From Paramoeba atlantica (lineage: Eukaryota > Protista > Discosea), in contig CDRNVI010000211.1 in assembly GCA_977017575.1 (NCBI GenBank), forward strand, positions 1-57,072: 57,072 nt of DNA, written 5' to 3'. The notes beneath the pieces were generated by a model. It was given only the letters and a program-made list of their open reading frames with translations. It did no database searches and was not told where the DNA came from. The position numbers were made by a program, and so were the translations under genes. Shown here piece after piece: positions 2,860 through 53,419 of the stretch. Position 1 is the first letter of the stretch. Each line of letters starts with the position of its first letter.

Positions 2860-3434
2860 CAAAACTGGACGATTTTTTTGAAATATGCGAGAAGAGAATC
2901 ATTGACTTAATTGCAATGACCACTCATAATGCCTCTAATGCGCAAGGAGTGGCTAGAAAGACTCCCGGTGATCGAACAGACGAAGCGTCTAAGGTTTTCA
3001 CCGAACGCCATGCTTCTATTCTACCGTGCTGGCCGCACGTTGTCCAACTTTTGTGCAATGACATTGTATCCGATACCCATTGACCTTGCTGGCGGGCTAG
3101 CTCTCTTTTGCCAGAGTGGAGTATGTGTCTATCTCCTTGCGACGAGTTTGAATTGAATTCGTCAGTAGATTACGTCATTGAAAAAACCGTTAAATGGTTA
3201 ATATTTGCGAATGTAGAAATGGTTGTGGCCGATATATCGTCTCACTACAATGTTGCTGATATCGGAACACGACCACTTATGAATTACTCGGAAGATGTTA
3301 AAGCTCGTTTGTCCAGCACTGTAAGCCGCTTGCGATGGTCGCTGTCTCAATACATAGATAAGGCTGTGACGTACGTACCACGCAATGAATTTCTTGTGGA
3401 TGGTGGCCTTGATAACAAAAAAGATGGTAATTGA
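2860..3434 (+). pseudogene. hAT-like transposase fragment
   Basis: ORFs 2616-3083 and 3108-3434 share a frame (stop at 3081-3083). Degenerate hAT motifs: IAMTTHNASN (tDNaxN), CWPHVVQLL (CxxH) and DIGTR (TRW). Preceded by GEEGESS low-complexity repeats. Confidence 0.6.
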
Positions 3435-3662
3435 AGTCTGGCATCAAATAATAACAATAAGCTACACTTCATGTTGAAGGCCAGACATCAACACAAAAAC
3501 TGCAGCACGTGCAAACGTACTTTTCATCGACGTATCACAAAAGTGAAGCAAAGAGTCCAATAGGGTTTGAGAAAGTCGAAGGAATAACAATCAACCCGCC
3601 TTTGCGCTGCCCCCAACGTCGCCCCTTCCGGTGTCCTCTCCGTCGGGCACTCCGAAATTTCG

Positions 3663-3770
3663 GCACCCGGCGTCAATAAGACAAGACGCTACATGCCTAG
3701 GGTGCTTGAAATCTTTTGGGGAGGCACTACCCAGCACCAGTAAAACAAGGTGCCAAACAACTAGGGTAGT
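3663..3770 (+). ncRNA. Two copies of the structured RNA module (outer stem, 6-bp inner stem, A-rich loop, 9-nt bulge ending CUA)
   Basis: gcaccc-ggcgtc-aataagacaa-gacgct-acatgccta-gggtgc and actaccc-agcacc-agtaaaacaa-ggtgcc-aaacaacta-gggtagt. Same geometry as the units at 45201-45451 and 52396-52642. Confidence 0.65.
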
Positions 3771-4499
3771 ACTCCTTCCCACCTTCTTTGAAGGCGCGCG
3801 GAGGGCTGGTTGTCCCTCACGTAGGGACCGCTGATTAGTGTGTCGCCTAGCCTCACTGCTTCTCCGACACCCGTTCACTGTGAAGTGCCAGCCGTGGCTT
3901 GCTACGGCTGGCTTGCCCGCCGGTCCGCAAGGACCGGTCGTACGCATCGGAGTAACATCCGAGCCGTCGGGCCCCCTCGCGTGGACGGTGGAGGGCCCAT
4001 AGCCTGTAAAGGCCAAAAGGGTGCAAGAAACAACAGCAATAACAATAATAGAAATGAACTACTCCTCCTCCATAAGTAATTATAAATACACCTCAAACTA
4101 GCACTTTTACTCCCTTGTGACTTATAATTCCAATGCCTTTCATAAGTAAATATAAATGCAACTCCGATCGATTCGATCGATAATTTTTTTTGTCTCATAT
4201 TTTTTTTGTTTTCTTTTTTTGTTGATTTCTGATGAGCTTGACAACCTTGCTGAGATTGGAGTGGAACGACTGAAAGATGTGCAACGATTAGTGAGTTGGG
4301 CTTTATTCAATAAAGCCCATTTCTTACAATTACATTTTCGAATTTCAGTAGATTCATACACTGGGGGACACTGGGGGTACTAGGTTCGTCTGCTCAATTT
4401 TATGCCAAAAAGGTGAAATTTCTTAAAAAAAACTTGCAATTGACGTTTTTGATCCTCTTACCATTTTATGATACTGCTAATTACACGGGAAACGATATA

Positions 4500-8798: not shown

Positions 8799-9629
8799 TA
8801 TGTTGCCATAGAGCTTCCGACTCAATCGGCTTTGTAACAAAAGTGTGATCGTATGCAAGTAAAGAAAAACATGTGAACAGTTCTTTTGCAATTTCGAGGT
8901 AAGATTTTTTAGGCGAAAAACACAATTTACTGATGCATAAAAACGAAGCATGTACCTTCAAATGAATACTAGCGGAACTCTTTCTTGTGCCTTGATTGAT
9001 GTCTATATGCGCCTACGCATGCTGTCGACCAAGGAATGGCTTAACCTTGTGGTATGCTTGCTTCATTCCTATTTGACCTGACTTTAGAGCTCCAGAACAC
9101 CTGTGAATCGAGTTGCGCGACTCGTTAATTGTTCTTTTTGGATGTTCTGTGTATGTATTCTGGGGCTCCGAGGTGCGCCTAATGGGCTGTACATTCTAAA
9201 ATCGTGTAAATCTCATTAACAGAGAAAATATTAATGAGAGGGAGGTAGTAACTGTAAAACATTCACCGAAAAAAACATTCTCCCAACAATAATTTACTCC
9301 TATGAAAAGGGTGATGAAGAAAAGGTTGCAGGGGGAATATGCACGAGCAAAGCGACCAATACATGAGCATGGCCGCCGTTCAAACGTTTGTATTACCAAT
9401 TCTCTGAATATGAGAATATGTAATTAATATTTAGAAAAGACATACAATACTCAAATTAACACTATCTTATTCAATAATAACACAATATTATTTAAATCGG
9501 GCCGTCTAATTCTATAATATTTAGTTCCCAATTTGAGTGATATCCCACCGCAAAATTTAACTATTTCTTTGTCAAGTATTTTTTGTATGCTGAGTTTTTT
9601 CGTGCCTATTTCCCATTATAGAGATCACT

Positions 9630-10352
9630 TTACCTACATATTCCACAAACACGCGGGATCGGTCTGTCGCGTGTCATCTCACCATTGCTTACCGTAATCT
9701 TTGTTCGCGCTACAGTATAATACAGATTTTTTAACTCGTCTCTGATATTTAGGAAGCCTTCAAGTTCTGCATTAAAAGCTAAAATTATGTCGCGCATGTT
9801 TTCGTGCACGAAATCGAATTCAACATGACCAGAAAATTTATTGTCAGACATATTAAGATAGACTAGAAAGGGTGGCAGGTGACGAAAATCTGGAGTACCC
9901 GTGAACTGGTTGTTGGATATGTTAATGAATTCCAGTTTCGGAGGCAACTGATCGAAGAGAAACTCACCCGACAGGAAGTTGTTCTGTAGGCTTAAGTTTC
10001 CCAACTCGGACGGCAAATATTTTACATTCAGCCGACCTTGCAGTTTCTTGCTAATGTCTTCGCCCATTCTGCCACACCAGTTTATTGAAATCACGTCGCC
10101 CTTGTCGTTACATCTGACTCGGTCCCATCTGCATCCCGGGGTATCGGTGGACCATGAGCGTGGAGGGATTTCTACGAGTCTTATCAAATCGTACTCCACG
10201 GGTAGCGACACGGCACTGACTTTGGATGGACGAGATGTTCCAGTCACATTAGAACTACTCGTTGAAAGTGTCGTGTCGGATGAGTTCGTTTCTATCCAGG
10301 CTTTCTTTCTTAACGGTTCCGTTACATCGGCCGAGAGCATAGAGACAATCAT
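9630..10352 (-). CDS. LRR protein subfamily A, copy A1 (240 aa)
   Basis: LPVEYDL motif, cap WSTDTPGCRWDRVRC, and LPxxLxxLxLxxNxFSG repeats. Highly similar to A2 and A3. Confidence 0.9.
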   Translation of the reverse strand: MIVSMLSADVTEPLRKKAWIETNSSDTTLSTSSSNVTGTSRPSKVSAVSLPVEYDLIRLVEIPPRSWSTDTPGCRWDRVRCNDKGDVISINWCGRMGEDISKKLQGRLNVKYLPSELGNLSLQNNFLSGEFLFDQLPPKLEFINISNNQFTGTPDFRHLPPFLVYLNMSDNKFSGHVEFDFVHENMRDIILAFNAELEGFLNIRDELKNLYYTVARTKITVSNGEMTRDRPIPRVCGICR

Positions 10353-10451
10353 AATTACAAATACAAATCAAGAAAAAAGAAAATTTCAGAGCAAATGCGG
10401 AGAAAATGCACCCGAAAAAGAAGAATTTCGCCTGCGGCGCATTTTTATTTT

Positions 10452-13104: not shown

Positions 13105-13289
13105 TTATAAGCAAAGTTTAAAAATATTAATGAGATCCGATAAGTGATTTTTTCTTATTATGGACCTCAAATTTTGATTTTCCAGACACTTCGTTCAACT
13201 TGGAGGCAATTTTTAGTGCAAAGTATGTGTACAGATGTCTTTCTAGATAAAAAATGGAGAATTTGAGGTTTATAATTATAAAAGTGCGA

Positions 13290-13757
13290 CTCAGAATTAT
13301 AATCCCATTAAATTTCTACAAACAATCCCTTTAATCATTTTTGGAGGTTTATAATATTAATGAGAGGGGGGGTAGTAACTGTAAAACATTCACCGAAAAA
13401 AACATTCTCCCAACAGTAATTTATTCCTATGAAAAGGGTGATGAAGAAAAGGTTGCAGGGGGAATATGCAAGAGCAAAGCGACCAATACATGAGCATGAC
13501 CGCCGTTCAAATGTTTGTATTACCAATTCTCTGAATATGAGAATATGTAATTACTATTTCGAAAAAATATATAATACTCAAATTAATACTACTATTTAAT
13601 AATAACACAATATTATTTAAATCGGGTCGTCTAATTCTACAATATTTAGTTCCCAATTTGAGTGATATCCCACCGCAAAATTTAACTATTTCTTTGTCAA
13701 GCATTTTTTGTATGCTGAGTTTTGTCGTGCCTATTTCACATTATAGAGATCACTTTA
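13290..13757 (-). repeat. Orphan 3' flank of an A-type LRR gene
   Basis: Matches 9210-9632 and 21300-21787 up to the stop-codon junction (gagatcactttacc), but no coding sequence follows. Confidence 0.8.
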
Positions 13758-14178
13758 CCCCTCTATCTATAATAACCCCTCCGCACCAATAAGGCGCTCC
13801 CCCCTTAACTTTTCAGAAAAATGTCCGTTTGAGCTGATTACATTTTGCAGATCTCAACACAAAGACTTTGCGCGTGAAGAAACGAAACAAAAAGAAACCC
13901 ATATGCAAATTTTAAAGAAGAATTACCATTTTTTCACCTTTTCCCCTTTGTTAGCCACACAAAATAGTAACTGTAAAACATTCTCAGAAAAAAGATTCTC
14001 CGAACACTATATTATTCGAACTAACACTATAGTATTTAAATAAGACCGTCTAATTCTATAATATTTAGCTCCCAATTTGAATTCTATCCCAGCGCAACAT
14101 CCACTATTTAGTTGTCAATTATTTTTTGTATGCTGAGGTTCGTCGTGTCTATTTCCCTTTACAGGTATTAACTCACCA

Positions 14179-14901
14179 TCATCCACGTATTCCACAAGCA
14201 GACCGGCTCGGTCTGTAGCGTCTCATCTCACCATTGCTTACCGTAATCTTTGTTCGCGCTACAGTATAATACAAATTTTTTAACTCGTCTCTGATATTTA
14301 GGAAGCCTTCAAGTTCTGTATTAAAAGCTAAAATTATGTCGCGCATGTTTTCGTGCACGAAATCAAATTCAATATGACCGGAAAATTTATTGTCAGACAT
14401 ATTAAGATAGACTAGAAAGGGTGGCAGGTGACGAAAATCTGGAGTGCCCGTGAACTGATTGATGGATATGTTAATGAATTCCAGTTTTGGAGGCAACTGA
14501 TCGAAGAGAAACTCACCCGACAGGAAGTTGTTCTGTAGGCTTAAGTTTCCCAACTCGTACGGCAAATATTTTACATGGAGCCGACCTTGCAGTTTCTTGC
14601 TAGTGTCTTCGCCCATCGCGCCACTCCAGTTTATCAAAATCACGTCGCCCTTGTCGTTACATCTGACTCGGTCCCATCTACATCCCGGGGTATCGGTGGA
14701 CCACGAGCGTGGAGGGATTTCTACGAGTCTCATCAAATCGTACTCCACGGGTAGCGACACGGCACTGACTTTGGATGGACGAGATGTTCCAGTCACATTA
14801 GAACTACTCGTTGAAAGTATCGTGTCGGATGAGTTCGTTTCTATCCAGGCTTTCTTTCTTAACGGTTCCGTTACATCGGCTGAGAGCATAGAGACAATCA
14901 T
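14179..14901 (-). CDS. LRR protein subfamily A, copy A2 (240 aa)
   Basis: 19 amino-acid differences from A1 by manual alignment. Intact ORF. Confidence 0.9.
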   Translation of the reverse strand: MIVSMLSADVTEPLRKKAWIETNSSDTILSTSSSNVTGTSRPSKVSAVSLPVEYDLMRLVEIPPRSWSTDTPGCRWDRVRCNDKGDVILINWSGAMGEDTSKKLQGRLHVKYLPYELGNLSLQNNFLSGEFLFDQLPPKLEFINISINQFTGTPDFRHLPPFLVYLNMSDNKFSGHIEFDFVHENMRDIILAFNTELEGFLNIRDELKNLYYTVARTKITVSNGEMRRYRPSRSACGIRG

Positions 14902-15198
14902 AATTACAAATACGAATCAAGAAAAAAGAAATTTTCAGAGAAAATGCGGAGAAAATGCATGGAAAAAGAAAAATTTCGCCTGCGGCGCATTTTTATTTTT
15001 TTAACACAGATTTCTGTCGGGCCAGATATTTTCGAGTTAACACAGATTAATATCATACAGATTAATGTTCTCCAGATTAGTATTACACAGAAAAATGTCC
15101 CCCCTGTATACCATTTATATAGCATTATAGAATATAAAGCTCCCAGATAAGGTAGCTCGGGATGAGCATTACGTGAATTTACACGAACATGCCCAGAT

Positions 15199-21126: not shown

Positions 21127-21784
21127 GATAAGGTAAAAAAAATCAAAAAAAAAAAATTATCTTTTTGTTTTTCCAAGAGACCTAAAAACGGCGGGAACGT
21201 ACAGATCTCAAACTTTTATAAGAAAAAGTGGTACGATAACCCCCCTAGCCCCCCTCGTGCGAAAAATAAGGGGGGGGTGCCTTTTTGATGCGGAGGGGTT
21301 CAGTTATAAAAGTGCGTCTCAGAATCATAATCTCATTAAATTTCTACAAACAATCCCTTTAATGATTTTTGGAGGTTTATAATATTAATGAGAGGGGGGG
21401 TAGTAACTGTAAAACATTCACCGAAAAAAACATTCTCCCAACAGTAATTTATTCCTATGAAAAGGGTGATGAAGAAAAGGTTGCAGGGGGAATATGCAAG
21501 AGCAAAGCGACCAATACATGAGCATGGCCGCCGTTCAAACGTTTGTATTACCAATTCTCTGAATATGAGAATATGTAATTAATATTTAGAAAAGACATAC
21601 AATACTCAAATTAACACTATATTATTCAATAATAACACAATATTATTTAAATCGGGCCATCTAATTCTATAATATTTAGCTCCCAATTTGAGTGATATCC
21701 CACCGCAAAATTTAACTATTTCTTTGTCAAGTATTTTTTGTATGCTGAGTTTTGTCGTGCCTATTTCACATTATAGAGATCACT

Positions 21785-22507
21785 TTACCTTAGTCCACAT
21801 GTTCCATAAACACGCGGGCTCGATCTGTAGCGTGTCATCTCACCATTGCTTACCGTAATCTTTGTTCGCGCTACAGTATAATACAGATTTTTTAACTCGT
21901 CTCTGATGTTTAGGAAGCCTTCAAGTTCTGCATTAAAAGCTAAAATTATGTCGCACAAGTTTTCGTGCACGAAATCGAATTCAACATGACCAGAAAATCT
22001 ATTGTCAGACATATTAAGATAGACTAGAAAGGGTGGCAGGTGACGAAAATCTGGAGTACCCGTGAACTGATTGAAGGATATGTTAATGTCTTTCAATTTC
22101 GGAGGCAACTGATCAAAGGGAAACTCACCCGATAGAGAATTGAACGTTAGCCGTAAAATTTCCAATTCGTACGGCAAATATTTTACATTGAACTGGCCTT
22201 GTAGTTTCTCGCTAGAGCCCATCATGTGACCCCAGGTTATCCAAATCACGTCGCCCTTGTCGTTACATCTGACTCGATCCCATCTACATCCCGGGGTATC
22301 GGTGGACCATGACGGTGGAGGGTTTTCTACGAGTCTCATCAAATCGTACTCCACGGGTAACGACACGGCACTGACTTTAGATGGACGAGATGTTCCAGTC
22401 ACATTAGAACTACTCGTTGAAAGTGTTGTGTCGGATGAGTTCGTTTCTTTTCGGGCTTTCTTTCTTAACGGTTCCGTTACATCGGCCGAGAGCATAGAGA
22501 CAATCAT
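21785..22507 (-). CDS. LRR protein subfamily A, copy A3 (240 aa)
   Basis: Intact ORF. It differs from A1 and A2 mainly between residues ~88 and 147 and in the C-terminal tail. Confidence 0.9.
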   Translation of the reverse strand: MIVSMLSADVTEPLRKKARKETNSSDTTLSTSSSNVTGTSRPSKVSAVSLPVEYDLMRLVENPPPSWSTDTPGCRWDRVRCNDKGDVIWITWGHMMGSSEKLQGQFNVKYLPYELEILRLTFNSLSGEFPFDQLPPKLKDINISFNQFTGTPDFRHLPPFLVYLNMSDNRFSGHVEFDFVHENLCDIILAFNAELEGFLNIRDELKNLYYTVARTKITVSNGEMTRYRSSPRVYGTCGLR

Positions 22508-23404
22508 AGTTACGAATACAAATCAAGAAAAAAGAAAATTTCCGAGAAAAAGACGTAAAAATGCCGATTGTTTTTTTAACACAGATTTCTGTCGGGCCAA
22601 ATATTTTCGAGTTAACACAGATTAATATCATACAGATTAATGTTCTCCAGATTAGTATTACACAGACAAATGCCCCCCTGTATATAATTTATATAGCTTT
22701 ATAGAATATAAAGCTTCCAAATAAGGTAGCTCGGGATGAGCATTACGTGAATCTACACAAACATGCCCAGATAAGGGACTTCGAATGTCAACGCGGTGGT
22801 GTTGAAATCGAGTTGCAAAAACTTTGGTAAAAGAATGAGAAGAGGGGACTCTCGATATAGCCGCGGAGCTTTGTCCCAAATTGAAGACGCCATCAGCGAA
22901 GAACGGAAGCTACAAGACGACTACAGGCGCATAAAGAATTTGTATTCAGAAGCGAGGGTCCAATCATGGACCGAGATGTTTGACCCGGACTGTATAGGTG
23001 GATGAATCGAGCGCAGGGAAGTTGTAGAGTATGCCACGGGGATGATTTTCCATCCTCCACACCTGGGGGTGACGCCCCCTGGCCCACAGTTTTGTAAAAT
23101 AGTGGGAGGGTCAAAAACGTCGATTGTTTTTTAAGAAATTCTGACGTTTTTCCCCGAAGCGTAAATCCAAACCTAGCACTCACAGTGACCCCCGTTCCTC
23201 TCTATACTAACAATATCTCTCTCTAGCAATTTTTATGTCCCCTGGGGTGAAAAATGGCTCTCCGACAATTTCTCCCGAAGTGAACGTGACTCGTCTTTGA
23301 GGCATGAATGATGAAAACAGAGGAAATCTCAAAAGCAATCAAAAAAATTGCGAAAATGCAAGTCAAAAAAAACTATTTTCACTCTAAAATGCGTCATGTG
23401 TAAA

Positions 23405-37063: not shown

Positions 37064-37194
37064 TTAGGATCCGCGGGAAATGGGGATTCGGGGGAACTTC
37101 TTTCAAGCTTCCGAATTACTCAATAAATAGGCTGCTGATGCGAGTCTGCTTTTCTTCTGATACATCATAAATTTTAGGCTCTGGCGCCCGCACA

Positions 37195-37970
37195 TTAATA
37201 ATGCATACTCAGCGGCACATTGATAATGCATATAGCACATTGATATTGCATATAGCACATTGATATTGCATATAGCACATTGATAATGCATATCGCGCGA
37301 CCCCCGCTAAATAGGGGGGGAAGATGGTAGTTGTGGGGTATGGAGGCCTTCACGCAACTCCGGGGCCTCACCGGGAGCAAAGGTGAATTTATTGGGTACC
37401 TCGGCCAAGCATCTTTACGTTCCATTTACGGTTCTGTTGTGCAGACGGGTAAACAAGATCTAGGTTTCGTTTTTGGGTGTCACACTTTCACGTCACTCAG
37501 TGGCCCGGCCGGCCCCTCCGTGCGTTCGGCCTCTCATATTCCCCAAAACAACTACCACCTTCCCCCCATTTATCACGGGTCGCTCGCGCGACCCCCGCTA
37601 AATAGGGGGGGAAGGTGGTAGTTGTGGGGTATGGAGGCCTCTCGCAATTCCGGGGCCTCACCGGGAGCAGAGACGAGTGTTCACTATTTCTTGAAAACAC
37701 CTTTAATTTCCAAATAATGCATCATCAATGTGCTGTATGCATTATCAATGTGCTATATGCATTATCAATATGCTATATGCATTATCAATGTGCTATATGC
37801 ATTATCAATGTGCAGTAACTATGCAATATCAATGTGCCGCTTAGTATGCACTATCAATGTGCTATATGCAATATCAATGGGCTATATGCATTATCAATGT
37901 GCTATATGCATTATCGATGTGCGGCACGTTATGCATTATCAATGTGCAGTAACTATGCATTATCAATGTG
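37195..37970. repeat. Inverted pair of 20-bp ATGCATTATCAATGTGCTAT arrays around a duplicated GC module
   Basis: A reverse-orientation array at 37195-37295 and a forward array at 37717-37970. gcgcgacccccgctaaatagggggg occurs twice in between. Confidence 0.9.
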
Positions 37971-37976
37971 CGAGTG

Positions 37977-44729: not shown

Positions 44730-45133
44730 TTGTTTCTATTTTTTTTTTCTGAAAACGTGTTAAAACGCTTCCTTGGGTTACCCCCGAGGTCCCGGACATG
44801 CATACACCCACCCCCTACCCCCTGTACGCCTCCTGTTGGGCTCCCAAGCCAAATCTCTCTTACCGGGGGTCAGCCCAAAAAGGGCCAAATCTCTCTTACT
44901 GGGGGGGTATACGGTATTTCGAAAATCGACTCCTAAAACGGATTTTATGAGGTTTGGGCCTCAGCTACCATTCTACGACGTTTTTTTCGACAGATTCGAC
45001 TCCTGCCCCTACTGGTAAGGCATCAAAAACGGCCCAAATTCGGGTTGAAATTTCGCGGCTGAAATTTCGCCGAAAAATCCAGCTTTTTCACCCAAAAAAA
45101 TAGATTCTTCATGATCTTTTTCCAATTTTTATG

Positions 45134-45654
45134 TTATAGAGTCAGGGCATCCGGCTTATGTCGGATGATGGGACTTAGTGATCCCAGCTTCCCGAGCTAA
45201 CTCACCCGGTGTCGTAAAGCAAGACGCTAAACAACTAGGGTGAGATTGCTTTCATGGAAACTGGAAATGGCAATTCCAGCACCCGGCGCCAACAAATCAA
45301 GGCGCCAAATAACTAGGGTATGAGGAATGCCGCGGAAAGAGTCTGCCCGGCACCAACAAATCAAGGTGCTAAATAACTAGGACAGAATTCTTTATCCCGC
45401 GTATGGGGTTACCCGGTGTTAGCAAAACGAAACACTAGGAAACTAGGGTAAATACCCATACGCACCAACTAATAATCATTGGATGCTTGCCGTTGTGCAG
45501 TCTGTAATGCCCACAGCCTAAAAACTGTGACGCATGGCAAAAGCTATGATTTTCATTGCCTGGCGCGCGCCGCTAAAAGCAGTTAATATTGGATAGTGCC
45601 CGGCTATCTCCGGGAAGGTACGTCCCTACGGGAAAAATGTCTTTTCCAATCAAT
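45134..45654 (+). mobile_element. 5'-truncated 3' end of an R2-like (RLE) non-LTR element, copy 1
   Basis: Homologous to 52325-52854. The ORF stop at 45198-45200 is followed by four structured modules. The CAAT tail is split by a TIR element and resumes at 46665-46680. Confidence 0.6.
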
Positions 45655-46664
45655 GGGCGGTAGGGACAAATATTTGACGAAAATTTGATTTTTTTCGAAA
45701 TTTCTCACAATAATTTTTTAAACGTTTTCAAATCATTTTCGTATTCATGCAGCCATTTTCAGCGTCTCTGAGTGCATAATTTTATTAACTTGTTGCACCA
45801 TACTTCTTTAGTAACATGGCATAGTAATTCACTCTATCGAAACTTTTCCCATGGGTAGATCACCCAGAAATCCAACACTCTGGTCGAGAGTGCAATAAGT
45901 CAGCGCGGCGAGACGTTCATGTCGGCGCTTGAGCTCCCCTGACGATTACTTGGGAATGATCGGTTACTTTGTTTCTTCCCGGCGATCTGAAGGAAGTTTC
46001 GACGCTTTGATCCACATGAAATCAACATTTTCTTACCTGACAAACGCAGATGACTATCGCAGGACGGCAAATGCGTTTCTGAGTGAATGAAGGGCACCGG
46101 GTCGCCCCGGCTGGCCGCTGGCTCCCTCAGGATGTTCCCCCTTTGGGAAGTTGCCACCCTCCTTCAAGGGTGACACAATAGGCCCTTCACAGACGTTTGG
46201 GGGTGCGAGGTCCGAACGCCTCTACCAGTTTCTGCCGACGTGTTTAACGTTGTTTAACGACCACATCGGGTACGGGAGTTGGTTCCATGCGGGGGGGAGG
46301 GGGTCCGAGTCGGTCCCCCAGACCTCAGACCTATTCGGAGGGTCTGTGTGGATTCGGAGCAGCTGTGTGAATCACTAATCATTGTTCTTGCTGACTGGTC
46401 GAATTTCTCGGAGTGTTAGACCGCCCACTATTACCGTAAGTCCCGTAAGAGACATTGGGCCCCAGTAAACGAGATTTGGTTCGAGGGGCTGGATGGGGGA
46501 TCGTGGCTGGGATGGGTGACGGTAGCTGGGCGGGCGGTGATGTCTCTTTTAAACGCTTAAAATGGTTGTATGAACCTGCAAATGCCATAAAAACATTTAA
46601 AAGGACTTTTGAATCATTTTCGAAAAAAAACAATTTTTCGTCAAATATTTGTCCCTACCGTCCC
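45655..46664. mobile_element. Non-autonomous TIR element (1010 bp) inserted in the (CAAT)n tail
   Basis: ~46-bp TIRs GGG(A)CGGTAGGGACAAATATTTGACGAAAA. CAATCAAT on both sides, so the TSD is 4 or 8 bp (ambiguous inside the microsatellite). No transposase. Confidence 0.85.
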
Positions 46665-47222: not shown

Positions 47223-48485
47223 TTAGAAAAGTAAAGTAATATTCGTGTTTCTAATGTTGAGATTAAAGCCAGCCATATTCGGAAGCAGGCGCTTTTCTAT
47301 CTCGCCATGCAGATTTACGTTGTTTGACAAATCGAGCTGGTGCAATGTACTCGGAAGGCTTCTTACGTCAATTTTGACGGAAAACCTATTCGTGAATAGT
47401 CGAAGATCGCATAAGTTTGGGAGATCACGTAGACAAAGGTTTCCTGATAACTGATTACAGTCAAGACTGAGATATTTCAACCTAGGAGGCAATCTATCTA
47501 AGCAAATTTCACCTGTAAATCGGTTACCGGAGAGGTTCAGCTTGTTCATATTCGGAGGGAGAGTTGTCAAGTCCAATGGTCCACTAAAATCATTGTAAGC
47601 TAGAATCAAAACACCTAACTTGCAGGGCAATGTGCTCAGTGGAACTTCGCCCGAAAGCTTAGTAAGAAAAAAACTGAACGTGTATACTGTATTTGGGAAA
47701 TAACCAAAATTCAACGATCCAGTGAGATCTTTGTATGACTTATTTAAATACCCGTTCCAATATATAGACGTAATCTCATTCGCCTTATTACAATCCGCGC
47801 CATCCCAATTACAAGCAGGAGTTGATGTATTCCATGAACAATGTGTATTCTCAATATTCTGTACGAGTAGTGCAAGTTCGTATTCCTGTGGGAGATTCGC
47901 CTTGCTGACTCTAGCTGCTCGTCTTGTATAGTGGGATATATAGTGTATATACACTTTGTATATACAAATGTAGATACAGTTTCTGTACCTTGTTGGTACA
48001 TTTTCCTTTAGTTCATCTTTTCTTTCCCCGGCAACGGGCATAGTCTTACTGTTAATATGTCCGTTGCCGGCCGGCACTACGGCCGAAACTGTCCCTCTTT
48101 CTCGGCGAAGTAGGGGACGCGCTTCCACCCCATCACCCCTCCCCGGCTCACTCTTTGAGTGTGTTATCTTCCCTCCCCGGCTTTCTTCCCTTCGCGCCCT
48201 TTCCTTCCCGGGGCCTCCCTTGAGCACCACTGGGCGTGGCTCTGCCTCGTCTTATCGCGAGGCAGCGGTCGGTTGCAGTGCGCCCCTCCGGCTGCGTAAA
48301 GAGAGGGCGAGTTGCCTGGACCCCCTCTACCGACAGAGTCCGAGATAAACCCCCTTGGTGCGACATCCGTCATTACGGATTGTGCCGATGATATCGGCTG
48401 TCGCATCAAGGGCTGTATCTCTGCGCCAACGAGCGCATGAACATCAAAACACTGTAATATCCGCAGCAGAAACGCTACAAAGCAT
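47223..48485 (-). pseudogene. LRR subfamily C, copy C3, interrupted by the SL-headed insert
   Basis: MLCSVSAADIT lies at 48485-48452 and the rest of the gene below 47937. The track ORF 47223-48230 is a chimera with insert sequence. Confidence 0.88.
47938..48451 (+). other. SL-headed ~510-bp insert, copy 2
   Basis: AGATACAGTTTCTGTACCTTGTTG|GTAC at 47972-47999. Hairpin ccggcaacgggcat/atgtccgttgccgg. Preceded by 34 nt of palindromic filler. No TSD compared with intact C2. Confidence 0.72.
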
Positions 48486-52134: not shown

Positions 52135-52854
52135 GTGTACTGGGCTCCGAATTGGAGACTCTGGAACACCGCTGGGAGGTGGACTCTTATCTGTTCGCGA
52201 GCCAACGGTCCGGCAAGCTTGAGAAACACGTCCCCCATAGCAATGGGCCTGAAGGAGGAGTGGTGTCCGACCGGGGCCCCAGGTTTGATGAAGAGCTTGA
52301 GGTTGGCTCCCGTGAGGAAGGACCTTATAGACGAAGTCAGGGCATTCGGCTTATGTCGGATGATGGGACTTAGCGATCCCAGCTTCCCGAGCTAACTCAC
52401 CCGGTGTCGTAAAGCAAGACGCTAAACAATTAGGGTGAGATTGATTTGGTACAACCTAGAAATGGCAATTCCAGCACCCGGCGCCAACAAAACAAGGCGC
52501 CAAAGAACTAGGGAGTGAGGAATGCCGCTGAAAGAGTCTACTCGGCACCATCAAAACAAGGTGCTAAATAACTAGGACAGAATACTTTTTCCCGCGTATG
52601 GGGTTACCTGGTGTTAACAAAGACACTAAGAAACTAGGGTAAATACACATACGCACAAAAAAATAATCATTGGATGCTTGACCGCTGCACAGTCCGTAAT
52701 GCACACAGCCTAAAAACTGTGACGCATGGCAAAAGCTATGATTTTCATGGCCTGGCGCGCGCGGCTAAAAGCAGTTAATATTGGATAGTGCCCGGCTATC
52801 TCCGGGAGGGTACATCCCTGGGATAAATGCCCTTATAAATCAATCAATCAATCA
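52135..52854 (+). mobile_element. 3' end of an R2-like (RLE) non-LTR element, copy 2
   Basis: The ORF end SPIAMGLKEEWCPTG...LMKSLRL resembles the RLE C-terminus. TAA at 52393-52395, four structured modules at 52396-52642, and an (AATC)n tail at 52838-52854. Confidence 0.6.
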
Positions 52855-53419
52855 TAGACGGTTGGAGAGAGTTGGTGAGATTCCCGGGGTGATCCAAGTC
52901 CCCGCATCTCTGGGATCGTCCGCCTGGAGGATAGGGATCAAAAGTTCGTTAGTCCATCCAGAAGAACCAGGCGCTCTGAGCGGGGCCAGGCTCAGAGCCT
53001 TACTGGCTACGTCCGCCGTGTAGACTATCCGCCGTGTATACTATCCGTATATACTCTTGTCGTAGGCATACTTTAGCTAGAGGGTCTAGTGCGGCTTCGA
53101 GGATCTTTGCAGCCGGGAGAAGGTACCTACCCGGACTAACTGTTCGGCTCGTTTTGTAGCTGACTGGGGGGGGCCGTTGACGGGGAGAGGCGTGGGAGCC
53201 AGGTCTTAGACCCCTCCCAATGAACCCTCTTACGTAGGCGGAATGAACACCGGAAAGTGGTGTTTCAGCTTAGGAAAAAGTGGATAAGTCCGTTGTTTGC
53301 GGGTACAATAACATAAACACTCTGCATTGAAATAAATAAACAAACAACCCTAGCCAGCTGTTTCTGAAAAAGCTTATTCTCTGAACAGGAAGCGTGGAAG
53401 AACAGGGATGAAAACCTCG

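Follow-up and report, generated by a model that had tools for sequence, protein, structure and literature searches.

In stringent-type LINE/SINE pairs, such as those of the eel UnaL2/UnaSINE1 type, a single hairpin lies at the very 3' end of the element, beside the tail repeats. In the SINEs derived from 7SL RNA, the Alu domain binds SRP9/14, and in flaviviruses the duplicated folds at the start of the 3'UTR are pseudoknot-based and have a demonstrated exonuclease-stalling role. SINE bodies have been traced to the 5' regions of RTE and Vingi LINEs (Kojima, 2018; PMC5786205), and Pr77, the first 77 nt of trypanosomatid retroposons, combines a promoter with an HDV-like ribozyme (PMC3383444, PMC8190864).

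The module described here, from a stretch of 57,072 nt of Paramoeba atlantica DNA that was analysed as a whole (positions 1 to 57,072 of contig CDRNVI010000211.1; hereafter, the window), is an uncatalogued structured RNA that belongs to a known kind, the conserved LINE/SINE RNA domain. Like the UnaL2/UnaSINE1 hairpin, it is common to autonomous LINEs and their non-coding riders, shows compensatory changes and is presumed to be a protein handle; unlike that hairpin, it is internal, occurs in zero to four copies, is joined to several unrelated tails and coexists with a separate terminal hairpin. In our working model it would resemble the Alu domain, as a structured SINE RNA that docks a protein and thereby brings the RNA near the LINE machinery, although its fold and origin are different and no 7SL or other small-RNA match was found in Rfam. 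With the flavivirus 3'UTR elements it shares the arrangement of tandem, small, conserved folds just after a stop codon in a non-polyadenylated RNA, but no pseudoknot was seen in the module and Rfam gave no match. Similar to SINE bodies (the CORE, V, Deu and Ceph domains of SINE superfamilies, and bodies derived from LINEs; PMC5786205), it lies between head and tail in families that differ in their tails, and part of it is of LINE origin, with the tails exchanged. By contrast with those bodies, its source is the start of a LINE 3'UTR and it is a short tandem hairpin with clear covariation. Finally, it recalls Pr77/L1TcRz (PMC3383444, PMC8190864) in being a short signature common to LINEs, SINE-like elements and relics, in a related protist group, and differs from it in being internal or in the 3'UTR, in forming a nested hairpin and in matching no HDV family.

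A preliminary description of the window, made from its letters alone, had reported ten units of nearly fixed geometry. We built a covariance model (R1; 55 positions, 13 pairs) from a structure-blind MAFFT alignment (A1) of these ten window units. Run on both strands of the window with the filters off, R1 recovered exactly those ten as strong matches, at the positions and with the geometry that had been described, all on the + strand and scoring 54-71 bits, with the next-best match in the window at 11 bits:

45197-45250, + strand: module A1, inner stem GGUGUC/GACGCU, R1 score 66.4 bits
45274-45328, + strand: module A2, inner stem GGCGCC/GGCGCC, R1 score 67.3 bits
45338-45392, + strand: module A3, inner stem GGCACC/GGUGCU, R1 score 71.4 bits
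45404-45457, + strand: module A4, inner stem GGUGUU/AACACU, R1 score 62.3 bits
52392-52445, + strand: module B1, R1 score 64.0 bits
52469-52523, + strand: module B2, R1 score 66.5 bits
52533-52587, + strand: module B3, R1 score 67.1 bits
52599-52648, + strand: module B4, R1 score 54.4 bits
3658-3712, + strand: module C1, R1 score 60.3 bits
3722-3776, + strand: module C2, R1 score 69.0 bits

Each unit runs, from 5' to 3', through an outer stem ending in CCC, an inner stem, an apical loop, the inner return strand and a bulge to GGG and the outer return strand. The inner stem has 6 bp, starts with GG and is stacked directly on the outer stem, with no gap. The apical loop of the window units is A-rich and 9-10 nt long, except in 52599-52648, where a 4-nt deletion leaves 6 nt, and their 3' bulge is 9 nt long and ends in CUA (UUA in 52392-52445); the single-stranded consensus is A-R-Y-A-W-A-A-C-R-A for the apical loop and AAA-N-AACUA for the 3' bulge. 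In the minimum-energy fold, the outer helix of module A4 is longer by about nine pairs (about 45395-45466). A strict IUPAC pattern of the module matched six times in the window, compared with an expectation of zero from 100 dinucleotide shuffles.

The structure of the module is real and under selection. In the alignment of the ten window units (A1), 93.8% of the cells are paired, compared with 32-41% when the partner is slid by 1-3 columns, and two-sided change is seen in 8 of the 13 pairs. The covariation score of these units was reached by 0 of 500 shuffles, a control that overstates independence because the copies are kin by descent, which leaves the number of pair types and the slid controls unaffected. 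RNAalifold, applied to the structure-blind MAFFT alignment, returned the same two helices with three more outer pairs. Among 67 distinct copies (97 R1 hits, 30 sources), 93.1% of the cells are paired (33-42% in the slid controls) and 10 of the 13 pairs show two-sided change; this larger alignment (A3) was fitted to the model, and the structure-blind A1, made from ten units only, agrees with it. The outer helix has a further four-pair extension, set off by one bulged base, that also covaries and brings the count to 14 of 17 pairs, and with this extension the hairpin is 55-60 nt long. When the entire 501-nt element (45140-45640) is folded, its minimum-energy structure contains all four modules (z = -4.07).

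The strand on which the structure acts can also be read from these data. Cells with G.U or U.G number 95, those with A.C or C.A 25, and the + strand folds better than the - strand (Wilcoxon p = 7e-4), which together indicate that the structure belongs to the + strand as RNA. The pair that closes the inner helix is a conserved G.U in 46 of 66 sequences. Covariation of both stems had been proposed from the ten units and is borne out by the ten-unit and the 67-copy alignments alike, as is, by the pair counts and the folding comparison, the earlier suggestion that G-U pairs favour the plus strand.

The module is not confined to the window. In the 45.7-Mb, 248-contig assembly that contains it, R1 gave at least 150 scored matches, all with E <= 4e-11, and the strict pattern found 359 copies (183 on the + and 176 on the - strand), while the reversed pattern, used as a control on the same genome, had no matches. 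The earlier count of ten copies at three loci therefore holds for the units of the window and falls short as a total. Thirty types of inner stem were found among 80 copies from different contexts, and in 66 sequences the unpaired bases are conserved more strongly than the stem bases: loop positions A23, A25, C27 and A29 and bulge positions A48, A52, A53, C54, U55 and A56 are retained in 60-66 of the 66. Stronger conservation of unpaired bases than of stems fits recognition by a partner and not mere stability. A variant of the module, found genome-wide (e.g., C1:85401-85437), has CGUUUCACACGA instead of the A-rich loop and a 5-bp inner stem, with the bulge AAAUAACUA retained; because the variant swaps the loop and retains the bulge, the core of the module seems to be the bulge and the junction, not the loop.

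The arrays of the window lie in SINE-like elements of about 500 bp and about 400 bp:

45140-45653, + strand: SINE-like element, copy A, with a 60-nt head, four modules and a tail of about 195 nt
45140-45200, + strand: non-coding 60-nt head, ending in TAA, also present in SINE families with different tails
52335-52854, + strand: SINE-like element, copy B, with four modules and an (ATCA)n end
3635-4047, + strand: second SINE-like family, about 400 bp, with two modules at the 5' end and a 270-nt GC-rich tail

Copies A and B and a third full copy on another contig (C27:276229-276727) are 91-94% identical over about 500 bp and share a common, sharp 5' end 60 nt before unit 1, upstream of which they diverge completely. 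In the self-comparison of the window, 45140-45639 and 52335-52829 are 91% identical and their upstream flanks share nothing. The 3' end of all three copies consists of a hairpin preceded by ATCTC and of a short CAAT/ATCA repeat, with ATCTC, then the hairpin, and a short CAAT repeat in copy A. Copy B has a target-site duplication of 6-7 bp (TAGACG at 52855-52860), and the C27 copy is flanked by one of 9 bp. The array elements thus show the features of SINEs, being short and non-coding, with discrete ends and, in copies B and C27, target-site duplications.

All genome matches to the head with unit 1 begin at query base 1-3, and the head folds as two small hairpins (z = -2.1) and has no match in Rfam. 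As to the tail of the 45140-45653 family, only its last 46 nt recur elsewhere in the genome. A related and much commoner SINE (L063:7684-8226) combines this head with three modules, a body and a distinct tail ending in (ATC)n, and is inserted inside a LINE ORF with a 14-bp target-site duplication. At this locus (L063:5824-9196), the LINE-like ORF is split by the three-module SINE and its frame resumes after the 14-bp duplication, so that the insertion is recent.

The preliminary description had placed unit 1 right after the stop codon of a retroelement ORF, and this does not stand, as no retroelement ORF ends at 45200 or 52395. The frame closed by the TAA at 45198-45200 spans fewer than 50 codons, the one closed at 52392 has 90 codons, extends across the boundary of the element and matched nothing in Pfam, and the ORFs that neighbour the arrays are LRR genes on the other strand. 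Given the shared sharp 5' boundary and the presence of the same head in the SINE with the 14-bp duplication, the TAA at 45198-45200 lies in a non-coding SINE head and is not an ORF stop. The context of the units at 3663-3770, which had been called unrelated, turned out to be the second SINE-like family (3635-4047). Genome copies of this family match the window from 3635/3653 to 4035/4047, and it starts about 5-25 nt before the first module. Its 270-nt tail alone recurs at many more places in the genome, and several of these tail-only matches lie 40-47 nt after the ends of LINE ORFs.

Further repeats were seen beside these elements. The contigs C76 (every 10.9 kb; L031:275-455), C59, C26 and C136 have a 5'-truncated copy of the 45140-45653 family in each rDNA repeat, oriented against the SSU rRNA gene and some 1 kb upstream of it. 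This copy comprises units 2-4 and 160 nt of the tail and is 83-88% identical to the family; homogenisation of the rDNA array seems to have multiplied what was a single insertion. The window itself is also rich in other repeats, among them three 1.2-kb copies (9227-10409, 13276-15186 and 21304-22564; 88-96% identity) and, at 37190-37972, a tandem array with units of a few tens of bp.

Overall, the module is present in three LINE lineages of this genome and lacking in two, with some of these placements taken from coordinates only. In the first lineage, an ORF with an RVT_1 domain (L064:3-1136) is followed by a single module (L064:1163-1216), 24 nt after the stop, and, downstream of the module, by GC-rich hairpins and an (ATC)n tail. 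Five copies of this lineage were found, 100% identical, and its open frames reach 1145 codons. The last 145 nt of the three-module SINE are about 97% identical to its 3'UTR, and on sequence evidence the two form a standard LINE/SINE pair. The second lineage (L082), whose protein is 43% identical to that of the first, has two modules (L082:5487-5618); it was read on an ENA contig of assembly ERZ24900291, which is apparently from the same or a very near organism and hence is not independent evidence, and the closest LINE proteins in the public library also come from this assembly. In the present genome the second lineage has five copies with the same 51-nt spacing and the same R1 score, and in a third lineage two modules lie no more than about 200 nt from the end of the ORF, both as placed by coordinates only. 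The preliminary description had assigned the motif to a LINE 3'UTR, which is correct for these three lineages elsewhere in the genome and incorrect for the arrays of the window, as these are borne by SINEs.

As to the lineages lacking the module, one (L084) has none within 2.5 kb. The other is the LINE lineage that shares the tail of the 3635-4047 family, in which the gap from ORF to tail, by coordinates only, is just 40-47 nt; this leaves no room for a module in the LINE, while its SINE carries two. In a search for the clade of these LINEs, Pfam recognised only RVT_1. In the L082 lineage, the ORF runs through 14 codons of the first module (L082:5487-5541) and its stop codon (L082:5527-5529) is the invariant UAG in the AACUAGGG junction; the conserved bulge with U at position N also gives UAA in another frame. 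A read-through or recoding signal was considered and rejected, as no ORF follows the module and the stop lies 24 nt upstream of it in L064 vs inside it in L082.

The module matches no named family, and the preliminary description had likewise been unable to place it in one. Rfam (15) gave no match at the gathering threshold over the whole window, and at E<=10 over 45000-45700 gave only chance-level matches to miRNAs, snoRNAs and riboswitches (11-17 bits). We rejected an H/ACA-like snoRNA of the trypanosomatid single-hairpin type, since the internal loop is one-sided with a continuous 5' strand and forms no two-sided pocket, no conserved AGA/ACA box follows the hairpin, and no snoRNA matched at threshold. 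Also rejected were the preQ1-I riboswitch, as the 3' GGG pairs with the 5'-side CCC to give a nested topology instead of an H-type pseudoknot and Rfam gave no match, and the self-cleaving ribozymes (hammerhead, HDV-like, twister, pistol, hatchet and hairpin), to the family cores of which Rfam gave no match.

Beyond this genome, the strict pattern had four matches in JGI metagenomes, where R1 scored just 10-12 bits, that is, at chance level, and none in the contigs of prokaryote genomes or in viral contigs. LINE relatives at about 30% identity from other sources (L083, L085 and L086) have no module, and a literature search on kinetoplastid retroposons found no description of such a module. Within the reach of these searches, which covered metagenomes, prokaryotes, viruses and LINE relatives, the module appears restricted to this lineage.

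The organism appears to use a spliced leader (SL). A likely SL RNA gene is present in a 1454-bp tandem repeat (L077:1440-1600 and 2895-3022), which carries a 5S rRNA gene on the other strand (L077:577-695 and 2429-2547, - strand). The SL exon ends in CAGUUUCUGUACCUUGUUG, followed by GUAUGAGAAGC, and a literature search for the SL sequence found no occurrence. The last 20 nt of the SL exon followed by GT were found at 177 places in the genome (95 forward, 82 reverse), mostly dispersed and including 47975-48451 of the window. In the copies read, the shared sequence begins some 28 nt ahead of the exon end, at ATAAAGAT, and runs on into GTAC, not GTATGAG; this shared start and continuation indicate an SL-headed SINE family, of which five sampled copies contain no module. 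A likeness of the module to the SL in the sense strand was looked for and rejected, the mean local score of 9.4 being below the shuffle mean of 10.8.

We think it probable that non-LTR retroposons carry the module as a portable cassette of structured RNA, which acts in cis as an accessory docking site for a protein and not as a priming handle. The cassette would act in the sense transcript of the element, as a hairpin whose CCC/GGG-ended outer helix, with the 6-bp inner helix stacked on top, displays the apical loop and the 3' bulge. It stands at the 5' edge of the region shared by LINE and SINE, opening the 3'UTR in LINEs and repeated one to four times in tandem within the body of SINEs, with the 3'-terminal hairpin and the microsatellite tail downstream. 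A protein, which may be LINE-encoded or a host RNA-binding protein, could dock there in a sequence- and shape-specific manner and so raise the chance of the transcript being kept, placed and copied, and SINEs may have multiplied the cassette to compete. In no element read is a module 3'-terminal: 130-270 nt separate the modules from the tail downstream, and a distinct terminal hairpin follows them. The modules number zero to four per element and are joined to at least three unrelated tails. The never-terminal position and the LINE lineages without a module suggest an accessory portable cassette. The same features make it unlikely that the module is the handle that the LINE reverse transcriptase grips for target-primed reverse transcription, as in stringent-type pairs: a module that is common to LINEs and SINEs and covaries would suit such a handle, but it is a different hairpin, with the microsatellite tail, that lies 130-270 nt further downstream, at the 3' end, elements carry anything from 0 to 4 copies, some LINE lineages lack the module altogether, and the same block of head and modules is joined to different tails. 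A module-bearing SINE that rides on a module-less LINE leans towards a host factor or a general property of the RNA, and it could equally reflect a role in RNA stability or localisation independent of the LINE machinery. A fair rival, which we nevertheless regard as improbable, is that the module stabilises the RNA, for example by stopping 5'-3' exonucleases and so protecting the 3'UTR part of the transcript in the manner of the flavivirus elements. The position of the module at the very start of LINE 3'UTRs, its tandem copies, the beginning of one SINE-like family (3635-4047) about 5-25 nt before the first module, and the microsatellite tails, rather than poly(A), at the ends of the element RNAs are all in keeping with such a block, whereas neither a pseudoknot nor ring-forming complementarity was seen in the module, the viral exonuclease-resistant families of Rfam gave no match, and the first module of the commonest SINEs is placed behind a 60-nt head.

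The partner of the unpaired bases might also be an RNA. In the antisense orientation, the mean score of the likeness between module and SL was reached by 2 of 1000 shuffles, and the SL contains CCUUGUU and AGUUUCU, the complements of the conserved loop end (AACAAGG) and of the bulge core (A-R-N-AACU), respectively. The loop and bulge could base-pair with the spliced leader, in the SL RNA or in trans-spliced 5' ends, and tether or circularise the retroposon RNA, a reading to which we assign a small chance. It draws mainly on a variant with a GGUACC stem, whose complementarity to the SL exon end covers 17 of 19 positions and includes a single 2-nt gap; this variant occurs in LINE 3'UTRs and supplies the third unit of the commonest SINE. 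Among 65 variants the top antisense-SL score was 27, a value attained by none of 2000 mononucleotide shuffles of the SL and by six of 2000 dinucleotide shuffles. However, the GGUACC variant accounts for 0 of the 10 window units, and most variants, all ten window units included, share just a 7-mer with the antisense SL. The mean module-SL duplex energy is weakly better than that of shuffles, 12 of 300 of which reached it, the pairing would require the covarying inner helix to open, the sampled SL-headed SINE copies lack the module, and the resemblance may stem from the descent of one variant from an antisense SL fragment. The chance is similarly slim that the cassette originated as, or still is, an antisense partner of the SL, with its loop end and bulge set against roughly the final 18 nt of the SL exon. 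If this were true, trans-spliced LINE RNA could close on itself 5' to 3', SINE RNAs could latch on to SL-bearing RNAs, and pairing with the SL would replace the poly(A)-based closed loop and select full-length templates. We consider it very unlikely that the module is a self-cleaving ribozyme or a ligand-binding aptamer, even though its conserved unpaired nucleotides sit in a fixed scaffold and its bulge resembles the A-rich tail, ending in ACUA, of preQ1-I aptamers. Rfam gave no match even at E<=10, the helices are nested where preQ1-I forms a pseudoknot, no pattern of a conserved catalytic core was recognised, and the copies are full-length on both sides of the module; neither the catalytic option of the preliminary description nor ligand sensing has support. 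Equally remote is an action as DNA, in which the module would serve a DNA transposon, either as a hairpin in single-stranded DNA or as a double-stranded site for protein binding. Some cores are partly palindromic (e.g., GGCGCC and GGTACC), but the variable-length target-site duplications, the microsatellite 3' tails and the tails shared with LINEs are marks of retroposition, the excess of G.U lies on one strand, and no terminal inverted repeats were seen.

The function of the conserved central parts of SINEs is a long-standing question, and the module is an unusually clean case of it, being small and strongly covarying, with near-invariant single-stranded bases, and separable from the terminal priming hairpin. 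As it occurs in zero to four copies in SINE bodies and some LINE 3'UTRs of one genome, elements with and without the module can be compared. The new points are the presence of the module in three LINE lineages and its lack in two, the stop codon inside the module in one lineage, the SINE-borne nature of the window arrays, and a likeness to the leader that is antisense and not sense. The module also adds an uncatalogued structured RNA, in several hundred copies, from a poorly studied protist lineage.
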